Positions 30,964 to 36,071 of a DNA stretch of 64,000 nucleotides are shown here, piece by piece (the first letter of the stretch is position 1; each line of letters starts with the position of its first letter). The DNA comes from Entomortierella parvispora E1425 (Eukaryota > Fungi > Mortierellomycota): NCBI GenBank assembly GCA_020891255.1, contig BQFW01000015.1, positions 310,001 through 374,000 of the forward strand. The letters are read 5' to 3'. Position numbers and translations under genes: made by a program. Under the pieces are notes generated by a model that saw nothing but the letters and a program-made list of their open reading frames with translations, was not told where the DNA came from and made no database searches.

Positions 30964-32050
30964 TGTCAATTAGAATGGAGAGTTAGAGTAGAGTGTGGTG
31001 GGTAGGTGGGAGGAGTTCGCGGGTGAATGAATGAGGTGAGGTTACTGAAAGAAAGGAATGAAAGACAATCCTTCTTACCTTCGGCATTCTTTCTTCTCAT
31101 GCCCAACGGCAGACTTAAGGGGCGCTCAGCCCGCATTCCACGCTCTGCACTGCCCCTGAGTTGCTTTAATCCACCTTCGTCTTCGATTCTTCCTCTTTGC
31201 TCCACCTCGCTCCACCTCGTTCCATCGCTACAATAGTCAACATAAACCAACACCACGCTTCAACTATAGGATGACAAAGACATTTACAGGTCTCTCCCTG
31301 CCCTCTCAGTCCTTGCCATCCTCTTTCTGGGCTTGAAGTGCGTTGCCAGCGACAGCGCCATCACTCAGCATTGCTTGAGAACTATAAAGTGCTTTGATGC
31401 GTTCAGAAAATGGAGTCAGGAAGCACACAGCAAGAACCCCGTCACCACTGGCGATAGGGTGGCTAGTTCAGAGCAAAGTGTGGTTCATAGTTGGATTGCA
31501 ATGCATACCACGGTGTGTGAGGGAAGCGCCCGTCGGAGGTGATATCAGTCGTTTGAGAACAGATCTCTAGCAGCCGTAAGAAGTGTGGATCTAGAATGGG
31601 GTCTAGTGTCGTGTGGGGTGTAGATGTGCGAGGTAAAAACATGTACTCTGTCTTTGCATTGTCAACACTTGACTTGGAGTGCGGTGCCGACGTTTCTCAT
31701 GGACACCACCCGCAGTCAGTCCTTTCCTCAGAATTGCAAGATTTAGGCCATTGTGGCGCGTAGAGAAGTGGCGATATCGATGGTCTATGGTCCTGTTACC
31801 AAAAAACCTCGGTAAAGCAAGAAGACTGCAGGCGCAGCATAGAGCCCTTGTCCAGAATAAAAGTTGGGTTCATTGAGAGAGTCTGGAGGCGTAGGATTAC
31901 CGGGTCGAATGTCCGCCTTTCTCCACCGCTATAAAAGAACCATCTTATCCTTCACAATAATCTACATCTCAAGCATCCGCAAGCATCTTCCTTAACAACC
32001 GTCTCATAACTACACTCATCCAAAAAACCACCAGTCAACATCTATTAACA

Positions 32051-32404
32051 ATGGCATCGCTCAAGTCAAGTCTCTTCTTGGTCCTGGTCCTCGCGGGTTT
32101 CCTTTGTCTTTTGCAAACCTCGCAAGCCGTCTGCACCATTGAGCTGCAATCTTCAAGTTCCTCATACCCCGAGGATATCTGCTTTTTCTCCCTGCCCGAC
32201 TGTGGTAGCCTTTTGACGGAGACGGATACCATGGACCCAAAGTATGGATTGCTAGGCATTACGGTCACCCCTATCTCTGTTTCTCGCATGATGTTGAAGG
32301 ATGGGGATACCATGATGGTCAAGGCAGCTCTAGAGCCTTATTTGCAAGGCTGTTATAACATTGCCAAGGGAGCTTTGACTCTCTACGGCAAGGGTAGTGC
32401 ATAG
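32051..32404 (+). CDS. Small secreted 4-Cys protein S1 (117 aa), unknown family
   Basis: Signal peptide ending SQA|VC. TATAAAA at 31930 and AATAAA about 10 bp after the stop. Clear paralogy with S2 and S3. Confidence 0.85.
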   Translation: MASLKSSLFLVLVLAGFLCLLQTSQAVCTIELQSSSSSYPEDICFFSLPDCGSLLTETDTMDPKYGLLGITVTPISVSRMMLKDGDTMMVKAALEPYLQGCYNIAKGALTLYGKGSA

Positions 32405-32740
32405 ACACAAGAAATAAACGGTTTAAGCTCTATTCTCGCCTATCCCCATGCCTCGCATAGGGCTGGGCTGTCGCGGAGGCCAAGGTTGCTATGTGAACCC
32501 TATCCGGGCGGGGTTCAGATATTGCGCCAGAACCCGCTCAGCTCTCAATGTCTTCTTTTGGGCGATGAGAGGCACCTGGACGCAGGCGCAGCTTCACCCG
32601 CTAGAAAGATATAAAAGTACTCCTTCTGCACCGACTTTCTTACAAAAAAACATAGCAATCACCCAGAAACCTTCCATAAACAACCGACCTTGGCTCCATC
32701 TCCGCAAGAAATTCTTCAAGACCACCAAAAAGTTCTCACA

Positions 32741-33127
32741 ATGTCATCTTTCTCGCGTTCTTTCTTCAAGTCTCCTTGGATTGCCTTCTTAGTCGCCGCC
32801 GCGGGATTGTGCATGCTGGCCCAATCGCAAGCTGTCTGTATTATCCAGTCGTCCTATATTCCAAATGGAATGGTTGCTGATACTTGCGCTTACAATCTTC
32901 CGGACTGCTCCACCATCACGAGCGAGACACTCATGTCGAACTACGCCCTCAAAGGTGTCACGGTTCAGGTTGTTACTGTACCAGGAGCAACTGCGTCCCT
33001 TCGCATTGCTATCGCGGGTATGGAGACATACATGGTCAAGGCAGTTCTGGCTCCTCAACTCCTAGGCTGTTATATTAATGGAAAGCCGACCATGACCGTT
33101 TACAACACGAATTCCGCCTCCGCATAA
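32741..33127 (+). CDS. Small secreted 4-Cys protein S2 (128 aa), unknown family
   Basis: ATG at 32741 in acaATG context; signal peptide ending SQA|VC. TATAAAA at 32610 and AATAAA near 33159. Shares LPDC, YxLxGxTV and VKAxLxxxLxGCY with S1. Confidence 0.85.
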   Translation: MSSFSRSFFKSPWIAFLVAAAGLCMLAQSQAVCIIQSSYIPNGMVADTCAYNLPDCSTITSETLMSNYALKGVTVQVVTVPGATASLRIAIAGMETYMVKAVLAPQLLGCYINGKPTMTVYNTNSASA

Positions 33128-33706
33128 AAAAATTGTTCAGTAGTTCAGAACGTCTGCAAATAAACATTCCGTACTCAGCTCAGCTGCTGCAGCCAAAACA
33201 CACTATTGAAATGGGAGGTAACGTCCCTTGCCTCCATTGTCACCCTAGAAGATTCATTACCTTTGCTTTGTCTTTATGGCTGCTTTCTTAGCCATCTACT
33301 CCTTTACATGAGGATAATCCGTGCCAATGCGTCCCCCTTTGAGATTCAGGACGAGAAGGCGAGCAGGAAATTCATAGTTTTTCGATATGTGATTGAGAGG
33401 GTAACCGGCGCGAGAGTTCTTACCAAGGTTCAGTGGAGGCGCGGAAAGTTGACCCCCCTACAAGATGGGAATAGAGTAGAGCACTGGATCCAGGGGGTGC
33501 TGCAGTTCTCTTCTTTGATCGTCACTGAAAGAATGGAGCAAAACGAAAAAAAAAAAAAAAAGAGCCTGGAGGCGTCTTGAGTTGCCTCGACTATAAAAAG
33601 GATCCTGACATTCTTCATGACAAAGTATCATCCTACCCAAGAACATATCAGGTCCTTTCGCCACCACTCAAGCCAACCAACCCACCAGGTCATCAAACTA
33701 TCCACC

Positions 33707-34053
33707 ATGTTTTTTTTCAAGCCAACTCTTTTCTCAGTCTTGGTCCTCCTCGCTGGGTTCCTCTGTCTTCTCCAGTCATCTCAAGCCATCTGCATCATCG
33801 AAACCCAGTGACCTCCGGGGACCTCACCCAGACTTTGGATGACTGTTCCTTCTCCTTCCCAAACTGCAGCAATATCACATCCCAGACTTTGGAAACGACA
33901 TATGGTTTGAGCGGCTTCACGGTTACGCCTGTCCTCCCTTCGCGTGTGACAATCTCGGGCGGAGAGACATTTTTGGTCAAGACGGCGTTGGCCCAATACC
34001 TGTTGGCCTGTTACAACTACAAGGCGGATGCCACAACTATATACGGCCGGTAA
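33707..34053 (+). pseudogene. Small secreted 4-Cys protein S3 with a 1-nt frameshift at about 33804-33808 (pseudogene or homopolymer sequencing error)
   Basis: MFFFKPTLFSVLVLLAGFLCLLQSSQA|ICIIETQ* stops at 33809-33811. Homology continues in another frame (VTSGDLTQTLDDCSFSFPNC...VKTALAQYLLACYNY). One extra C in gaaacccagtg restores the ORF. TATAAAAA at 33592. Confidence 0.82.
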
Positions 34054-35140
34054 AGCACGCGTAGATCCCATCGCGACCTAATAAAACAGGGGTTTAATAC
34101 TACTTCCTTGAAGTTGACAGAAGACCCCAACCAGCGGTGTACATCCATGATGCACGTATTGTTAGCAGGGCGAGCCACGTCCATTCTTCTTTCTTCGTGT
34201 AAAATGGAGACAGCGCCAAACTTGCATCCCATGGTGGTGACCCATCAGGGGTAATTGACCCAAAGAATATAGTCTTGGCAGGAGATTCTGATCGAGCTGG
34301 ACTAGCAATTGCACTTCAACTATACTTGCGGGACTATGTCTAACCTGCAGTCGAACAAACGCTGGTTGTGCCACCAGTTACAATCTTGTTCAGTGAGTCG
34401 TGAAAAAATAATCAGGAGACGCGTCCTCTCTTCTCTCTTCTCTCTTCTTTCTTGATCAAATCATAGGTCTCGACAGAAATTTCCACATCGATGCCTTCTG
34501 CAACCAGCTTACAGTCGTACTGCTATACACTTTCACCTATAGGCCTGGACGAGACCACGATTTACGCCTTCCCAATTTTCAACTTTGCGAGAACTTATCT
34601 CTGTGGGGACTCGAACCTGGCACCCAATGAGCGTGTAGGAGGCATCTTGAATGCAGGTGGTATCGACACCGAGCCCAGCACCCCCCTGTGTCGCCCGTCT
34701 ACATTGCTGCTCTCGATCTGGAGTCCAGTACCTCGTTCGTAAGTCAAGAGCTCCTGCAGCTAAAATTCTTTTTGTTTTCGGTGCTTTCAGCAAGCTGGAA
34801 CGGTCGATCGTCTAGGTGTGATATCCGGCTCAGCCAGCCTATTTGACCCGTGAGAGGAATCCACCGGGGATCAAGAAGGTTCCGAGTTCTCTCTCTCTCC
34901 ACATCCCTGCCCCCGGCTCTCCACTTGTCTGTGCCACACCCGGTCGAGGTGGTGCAATCCATCAGACCTTTCTCTACTGTATTTTTAGGCTCAGAGCTGA
35001 GAGGTGCCACGGGCCACACACCTTCCTTGGAGAAATAATCACGTGATCAACGCACCCTGTGCCATTTGAAGCGCAATCACTCCTTCCATTTCACCACTTC
35101 CCTGCGAACTCACAGTTTTCCGTGTCTGCATTGAGATAAG

Positions 35141-36071
35141 TTATAAGTTGTCATCCTTTTTACTTTTATTGCCGGAAGAGACTTGTTCAAAGTGATGGAG
35201 CACTCTAGACCGATGGGCAATGGGCGTACAGGGGTCCTGTATAAAACGGTTCGTGGATCCATTACCATCACGCCCGCAAGGGAAAGGTCTAGGGCGCGAA
35301 ATTGATGATTTTGCAGCGCCTTCACTGTCCGAAGGGTCTGCCTCCTTGCGCTTGAATTCGAATCGAGTTAAGTCGTGGACCAGCAAGGTGCCATACAAAC
35401 CCAATGCACTTTTTTTTTCGTTTTCTTTTTCTTTTTATCTTTTTTGATATCCGTTCATTGATGTGCTAACATCATATTTTCGATTCAGTATTTCTTTTGA
35501 AGTCGCCACCAACGGCGATGGAGGTAATTCCGTCTGATCGTCATCGTCAGATATCCTATAAGACATCCCAATCCTAGGAGAAGTCGCACCACCCAGCTAC
35601 CTATCTGGGGATCCTGGAGAGAATAGTGGATTCTTTTCGAAATTTCGCCTTATCTTCTTCTTTTCAGATGTCCGTAAAATAGCCTCCATCCTGCTATCAT
35701 TAGAGTCATCCTCATCCTCTGAAGGATTGTCTTCAAGCATTGATGCTCGATACCGCGTTTGACAGAGGGAGAGGATGAAATGGACCCATGAGAGAGTCTG
35801 TGCTAGTAAATATGTAATGGGTTGACTGCTCCAATGTACTTTCTGAGTGTCTGCGGCTTCTCCACCTCCTATTGATCTTCTCCTCCTCATCCACCTCCAC
35901 TTCTACGGCTTCCCTGACAGAGTCTTGTCCATGATCATCAACAAGCCGATCGGAAAGCCGCGTTCCGTCCTTCTCTATCCCTTTGGCATCATACCCGGCT
36001 CGGCCGTTGTCTGAATGGAGAAATAACGCGTTTTTGAAGACAAGCTTTTCCTCAAAAGGCTCTAAGCCCAC
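35141..36071 (-). CDS. Possible fragmented or multi-exon acidic hypothetical protein; gene model unresolved
   Basis: Protein-like acidic stretches lie in different frames (VEVEVDEEEKINRRWR; EDNPSEDEDDSNDSRMEAIL). I could not build a consistent splice model. Confidence 0.25.

Follow-up and report, generated by a model that had tools for sequence, protein, structure and literature searches.

A tandem array of predicted small secreted four-cysteine proteins in Entomortierella parvispora belongs to an orphan family found in Mortierellaceae

Introduction

Mortierellaceae rank with the most common fungi of the soil; to our knowledge, their secreted proteins are almost unstudied. Fungal genomes hold many orphan families of small secreted proteins. 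Three co-oriented gene units on the + strand, at positions 32051–34053 of a 64-kb window of the Entomortierella parvispora E1425 genome (the whole stretch of DNA analysed here), raise the question of what such an orphan family is and does. The original prediction took them for a tandem trio of rapidly diverging, small secreted four-cysteine proteins, and suggested that they might be tied to a cluster of secreted proteases just upstream. Here we ask whether the three units are real and intact genes, whether they belong to any known family or fold, how selection has acted on them, and whether the link to the proteases holds.

Results

Layout of the array

The features of the three units, all on the + strand, are as follows.

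31930–31937, + strand: TATA box (TATAAAAG) of gene 1, 121 nt 5′ of the ATG
32051–32404, + strand: gene 1 coding sequence, intact and intronless, a single ORF of 117 residues (predicted protein P0003)
32413–32418, + strand: AATAAA polyadenylation-type signal of gene 1, 9 nt past the stop
32610–32617, + strand: TATA box (TATAAAAG) of gene 2, 131 nt 5′ of the ATG
32741–33127, + strand: gene 2 coding sequence, intact and intronless, a single ORF of 128 residues (predicted protein P0001)
33159–33164, + strand: AATAAA signal of gene 2, 32 nt past the stop
33592–33598, + strand: TATA box (TATAAAA) of gene 3, 115 nt 5′ of the ATG
33707–33811, + strand: 5′ part of gene 3 in the ATG frame, with the signal peptide (MFFFKPTLFSVLVLLAGFLCLLQSSQA), ICIIETQ and a TGA stop at 33809–33811
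33794–33843, + strand: spacer between the first and second cysteines of gene 3, 50 nt long where genes 1 and 2 have 45 nt; the frame is lost here
33796–34053, + strand: 3′ part of gene 3, an open frame of 85 codons with the core from the second to the fourth cysteine
34080–34085, + strand: AATAAA signal of gene 3, 27 nt past the stop of the core frame

The orientation and coordinates of the predicted trio stand, and genes 1 and 2 are each a single open reading frame, but the description of three intronless genes does not extend to the third, whose frame is broken. That each unit has its own TATA box is correct: TATAAAA occurs four times in the window, and three of the four occurrences lie on the + strand 115–131 nt before the ATGs of the array. 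A further promoter motif common to genes 1 and 3, CTGGAGGCGT, occurs in the window at a frequency not above chance. Single-sequence and profile searches of the 38.9-Mb genome return only these three copies of the family. A second run covers only positions 33380–33636 and carries no information on expression.

Genes 1 and 2 encode predicted secreted proteins

Genes 1 and 2 begin with putative signal peptides of 26 and 31 residues, respectively, which we judged by inspection and hydropathy. Both leaders combine a basic residue with a hydrophobic core of 10 residues (mean Kyte–Doolittle value 2.6–3.1) and S-Q-A at positions −3 to −1, and a cut behind this motif gives a mature chain that starts with V-C. 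The mature protein of gene 1 has 91 residues (9.8 kDa, pI 4.4) with cysteines at positions 2, 18, 25 and 75, and that of gene 2 has 97 residues (10.2 kDa, pI 6.2) with cysteines at 2, 18, 25 and 79. Both follow the scaffold C-x15-C-x6-C-x49/53-C. Gene 2 carries a 6-residue insertion in the β3–β4 region, which it shares with its metagenome orthologue P0002. The blocks Y(G/A)LxGxTV and VK(A/T)xL...CY can be aligned between the copies. Genes 1 and 2 unite a leader ending in SQA before VC with the four-cysteine scaffold, as had been proposed for all three; gene 3 splits these two elements over two frames.

The reading frame of gene 3 is broken

The ATG frame of gene 3 holds the signal peptide and the first cysteine only, and the core is read in another frame, which lacks any ATG upstream. 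The DNA of the signal peptide is 70% identical to the gene 1 region (0.51 in the shuffle control), and the core keeps the family invariants DxC, FPxC, YGLxGxTV, VK and CY and matches the family profile with an E value of 1.8e-33.

We considered whether splicing could restore the frame. Six GT..AG intervals of 29–95 nt would do so, and all are implausible as introns because each would cost the gene its ATG, its hydrophobic core or its cleavage site. Alignment of the copies at the DNA level places an intronless layout at their origin. An error of assembly is ruled out, since an independent Logan contig from a public run of the same sample (word depth 77) has 0 differences over 2201 bases, the break included, and since the E1425 assembly was polished with Illumina reads (PMC8759367).

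The core still carries the family invariants while the copies are saturated at silent sites, and the break is therefore recent relative to the duplication. From its sequence, gene 3 is probably a young pseudogene that lost its frame recently, although it could still be expressed through an unusual route. An RNA-seq data set of E1425 is on record (DRA013164; PMC8759367).

A very small family restricted to Mortierellaceae

To find relatives, we searched 5.8 billion proteins with a word index and 1.84 billion cluster representatives exhaustively with an HMM profile. Profile matches among the representatives fall into only 6 clusters, and the set of 5.8 billion proteins contains 8 family proteins, two of which are genes 1 and 2 of the window. 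The other six comprise one protein from Gryganskiella cystojenkinii, two from Lobosporangium transversale and three encoded on environmental contigs. One of the environmental proteins, P0002, is an orthologue of gene 2 with 61% identity over the full length. Four of the eight carry a source name, which in every case is 'hypothetical protein'. A scan of JGI metagenome contigs with the family pattern gave 85 pattern matches, none of which was confirmed, and the family was not found in most sequenced Mortierellaceae protein sets of the databases searched. The profile search thus brings up a few relatives from Mortierellaceae and the environment, and no characterized family among them.

The eight full-length members share the leader, the A–xC cleavage junction and the four cysteines. 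In the leader of all eight, a basic n-region precedes a hydrophobic core, and positions −3 and −1 carry small residues (SQA, TQA, SEA or IQA); the C terminus is not hydrophobic, and inspection and hydropathy reveal no other membrane anchor. The mature proteins are 86–97 residues long, acidic to neutral (pI 4.4–7.8) and mildly hydrophobic (GRAVY up to +0.6). Three cysteines, two leucines, a lysine and a threonine are invariant in the nine-row alignment, which covers all nine mature domains. The first cysteine is conserved in 8/8 full-length members, and an acidic residue stands just before the second. In most relatives an N-I/F-T sequon follows directly after the third cysteine.

Lobosporangium has several copies: one of its genes forms an inverted pair, and a second occurs at two loci. 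Each of these copies is arranged head-to-head with a gene for a secreted eight-cysteine protein with a hydrophobic C-terminal tail. The locus tags of the homologues are not mentioned in papers, and, by title and abstract, the papers found on Mortierellaceae 'small secreted proteins' describe no such family. On these sequence comparisons we regard the family as real: previously unnamed, Mortierellaceae-restricted orphan proteins that are small, four-cysteine and predicted to be secreted.

No known family or fold is matched

Neither the three window proteins nor any of the nine mature domains has a significant match in Pfam (listing threshold E 10; HMMER filters discard most matches above about 0.1). 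What appears below significance is noise, namely Acp26Ab (E 0.19) and STIV_turret_2nd (E 0.07–0.1). A sequence profile search of the PDB gave nothing below E 0.65. We then turned to structure prediction. AlphaFold modelled gene 1 from a 9-sequence alignment with a pLDDT of 82.4 (78–82 over the five models) and a pTM of 0.74, and gene 2 from a 4-sequence alignment with a pLDDT of 73.8. Both models have the same order of elements, β-β-α-β-β-α-β-β.

For these two models, the best Foldseek matches in the PDB have E values of 0.68 and 1.9, and a shape search of the ESM Atlas reached a TM score of at most 0.47. The Atlas search with language-model features returned no usable match, and the Atlas model of P0002 has a pLDDT of 0.38. 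In the wide VIA-align search, the best result lies below what is typically returned for unmatched models. The best structural match of all, the 'split β-α-β' fold of yeast YML108W (PDB 1n6z), is within background. The family is thus unrecognized, as the original prediction held, by sequence in Pfam and the PDB and by structure for both models. The predicted fold may be new, or it may be mispredicted from a shallow alignment.

Several known families of small secreted fungal proteins with disulfides, among them the hydrophobins, cerato-platanin and KP4/KP6, are alike in general type and differ in the number and spacing of their cysteines. Hydrophobins have eight cysteines in the pattern C-CC-C-C-CC-C, whereas the present proteins have four, no adjacent pair and no Pfam match. 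Cerato-platanin is a double-psi β-barrel, in contrast to the predicted α+β domain here; none of the nine members matches it in Pfam, and chains of barwin-like or cerato-platanin type are absent from the fold-search matches of both models. KP4 and KP6 are likewise absent among the listed Foldseek PDB and wide VIA-align matches of the two models, which derive from shallow alignments. A match to a characterized family such as a hydrophobin, cerato-platanin or a known lectin would have removed the novelty of these proteins, and none emerged from the Pfam and fold searches. As far as these tools can tell, hydrophobins, cerato-platanin, known lectins and known inhibitors are excluded.

The closest likeness is to the lineage-specific fungal small secreted (cysteine-containing) proteins, SSPs or SSCPs, also called 'candidate effectors', with which the family shares a predicted signal peptide, a length below 150 residues, at least four cysteines, the lack of a Pfam domain, a narrow range and local duplication. 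In line with the usual definition of that class, the proteins have a putative signal peptide without another anchor, and fewer than 300 residues with at least four mature cysteines. The class is an operational one and not a homologous family, and the present proteins differ from its image of diversifying effectors in having dN/dS below 1.

The copies are old and constrained

We estimated dN/dS for the mature parts by the method of Nei and Gojobori. The ratio is 0.18 between gene 2 and P0002, 0.23 between the Lobosporangium proteins P0007 and P0008, and 0.24–0.50 among the window copies. The underlying dS values exceed 1 or are not computable, and are saturated between the window copies. Outside the coding parts nothing of the duplication is left: promoters, 5′ UTRs and 3′ flanks of the three units are identical only at the level of shuffled sequence, whereas the coding parts retain an identity of 0.56–0.70 against about 0.50 for shuffles. 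With dN/dS below 1 and flanks at background, the units are best explained as old duplicates kept by purifying selection, and on these sequence grounds the three window copies are old paralogues. In the family tree, the sole resolved split separates Lobosporangium from the rest, and the branches leading to genes 1 and 3 are long.

The same data bear on whether the units are genes at all. Chance open reading frames or annotation artefacts would not be expected to keep homologues in three genera with dN/dS below 1 and conserved cysteines and motifs, nor to have promoter and poly(A) signals in the right places and flanks that decayed to background while the coding parts did not. This explanation is already close to refuted, and we give it almost no weight.

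They also bear on the rapid divergence that had been read from the low identity between the conserved blocks. With dS saturated between copies and dN/dS below 1, there is no sign of an arms race, and that part of the original prediction does not survive. The low identity reflects age and loose constraint rather than demonstrated diversifying selection. This matters for a role in antagonism, in which the family would be secreted toxins, killer-type or antimicrobial proteins, or effectors directed against bacteria, nematodes, insects or other fungi. Toxins and effectors are, as a general profile, small secreted proteins with disulfides that occur in multiple copies within a restricted lineage, and the family fits this, down to the tandem copies in the window, the inverted and dispersed duplicates in Lobosporangium and the long branches of genes 1 and 3. 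Yet dN/dS is well below 1 (0.18–0.50) wherever it can be computed, the mature pI of 4.4–7.8 is unlike that of cationic antimicrobial peptides, and neither KP4 and KP6 nor other toxin folds appear in the structural matches. We consider antagonism unlikely, if worth keeping in mind.

The protease neighbourhood is not conserved

The cluster upstream of the array was identified correctly: it consists of five S8 subtilases with PA/Fn3-like domains and an M28 aminopeptidase. The array lies only about 2 kb downstream of it, and this proximity is what speaks for a protease module, in which the small proteins would be co-secreted inhibitors (propeptide-like or other), substrates or chaperones of their S8 and M28 neighbours. 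The size of about 10 kDa and the α+β, sandwich-like order of elements may also loosely recall inhibitors of the I9 propeptide type. These subtilisin propeptide-like inhibitors, which include free-standing fungal forms, resemble the family in their size of about 10 kDa, in alternating β and α elements and in their proximity to S8 proteases.

To see whether the arrangement is kept, we compared the loci of the homologues. The Gryganskiella gene is surrounded by RPE65, Rer1, SNARE and kinase genes, and the Lobosporangium genes by VIT-VWA, oxysterol-binding, Myb and Syja_N genes. Within 10 kb of the homologues in either genus, no protease family has been recorded, and these loci have no synteny with the window and no neighbour in common with it save the family gene itself. 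The proximity seen in the window is therefore not conserved in other genera.

Nor do the proteins resemble propeptides. When hhalign was used to compare the family profile with the five propeptides of the adjacent subtilases, the probability was 0.06%, Inhibitor_I9 is not among the Pfam matches at the listing threshold of E 10, and propeptide or inhibitor chains are absent from the Foldseek and VIA-align matches of both models. In contrast to I9 proteins, the family model has two extra N-terminal strands and two putative disulfides. The units of the array also have TATA promoters of their own and are predicted to be transcribed independently. A functional connection with the proteases, as had been suggested, is thus not supported: the homologues in other genera lack protease neighbours, and the propeptide comparison shows no similarity. 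Because there is no conserved neighbourhood, a propeptide score near zero and no inhibitor structure, we hold a protease module to be quite improbable.

Discussion

We propose, as a reading that is reasonably probable, that the locus is a Mortierellaceae-restricted tandem array of two intact copies and one broken copy, and that it encodes a non-enzymatic, disulfide-stabilized extracellular protein without a tie to the subtilases. The signal peptide would direct the nascent chain co-translationally into the ER and be cleaved after S-Q-A, leaving a mature protein of 9–10 kDa that starts with (V/I)-C. The four invariant cysteines could then form two disulfides that lock the compact predicted α+β domain, and in most relatives the sequon would be N-glycosylated. 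Released outside the hypha, the mature protein may act as a non-catalytic extracellular binding or surface protein.

Such a binding or surface role is, from the sequences, most likely, rather than a role as an enzyme or as a cationic peptide acting on membranes. Conservation falls on Cys, Leu, Lys, Thr and Asp, which form no catalytic-type constellation; by an argument from absence, this points to a non-enzymatic role. The acidic-to-neutral, mildly hydrophobic character of the mature proteins argues against a cationic membrane-active peptide.

Besides antagonism, the main rival to this proposal is that the proteins serve the fungus itself, as a component of the cell wall or spore surface or in development; to each of the two we assign a similarly small probability. 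Purifying selection, the moderate hydrophobicity of the mature domain (GRAVY up to +0.6) and the conserved sequon would suit a self-directed role, as would the head-to-head pairing of the Lobosporangium copies with the secreted eight-cysteine, hydrophobic-tailed protein. Absence from most of the sequenced Mortierellaceae protein sets searched, however, would be odd for a core structural part, and the family has no GPI-type tail of its own.

A more novel reading may be imagined, although we think it improbable at present: the domain would be a new fold of a few Mortierellaceae genera, a secreted two-disulfide module used in a lineage-specific interaction, and gene 3 would be a trace of ongoing birth-and-death turnover of the array. 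If true, its interaction partners might be, for example, endohyphal or soil bacteria, or soil animals.

Relative to the original prediction, the picture changes in three respects: gene 3 has lost its frame, the duplicates are old and under constraint, and relatives do not bear out the protease link. What is left is a genuine orphan family, if a rather ordinary one; its general type is well known, its fold possibly new and its interest modest. It is clean and very small, numbering eight proteins among about 15 billion, and has a defined leader, a four-cysteine scaffold and a confident model without a structural neighbour. These properties make the family a tractable subject for determining a structure and for the question of which proteins early-diverging fungi release into the soil.

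Flanks of the array

The protease cluster upstream of the array, at window 8286-29849, was confirmed as five S8 subtilases and an M28/PA aminopeptidase. Each subtilase has two exons and carries PA and Fn3-like domains, and their first-exon products are 68-90% identical. Downstream of the array, the TATAAAA heptamer occurs once more in the window besides its copies at genes 1-3, and neither a family member nor an obvious secreted ORF was found after it. ORF pieces also lie on this side and, judged by eye, look like an intron-split glutathione-S-transferase-type protein.

35240-35246 (+), fourth TATAAAA
36363-37099 (+), ORF pieces

Family loci in Lobosporangium transversale

In Lobosporangium transversale, each family gene stands head-to-head with a gene for a secreted protein of 152/157 aa, which has eight cysteines and a hydrophobic, GPI-anchor-like C-terminal tail. 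The partner gene at locus L010 appears to be frame-disrupted or intron-containing. No counterpart of this eight-cysteine protein was found in the E. parvispora window. The gene for family protein P0007 is present at L010 as two copies with identical profile scores, inverted relative to each other and separated by about 2.3 kb, and that for family protein P0008 occupies two separate loci.

L010:7421-7741 (-), P0007 copy
L010:10001-10321 (+), P0007 copy
L010:8944-9650 (-), partner gene
L012:8615-9073 (-), partner gene
L013:8615-9073 (-), partner gene

Promoter flank and signal-peptide DNA of gene 3

A run of about 15 A (33548-33563) closely precedes the promoter of gene 3; the read-based comparison of the array left out 33535-33566 as repeat. 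Between genes 1 and 3, DNA identity is higher in the signal-peptide part (0.70; 32051-32128 against 33707-33787, only about 80 nt) than in the mature cores (0.57). Signal-peptide DNA that is more alike than the mature core is known from some diversifying secreted families.
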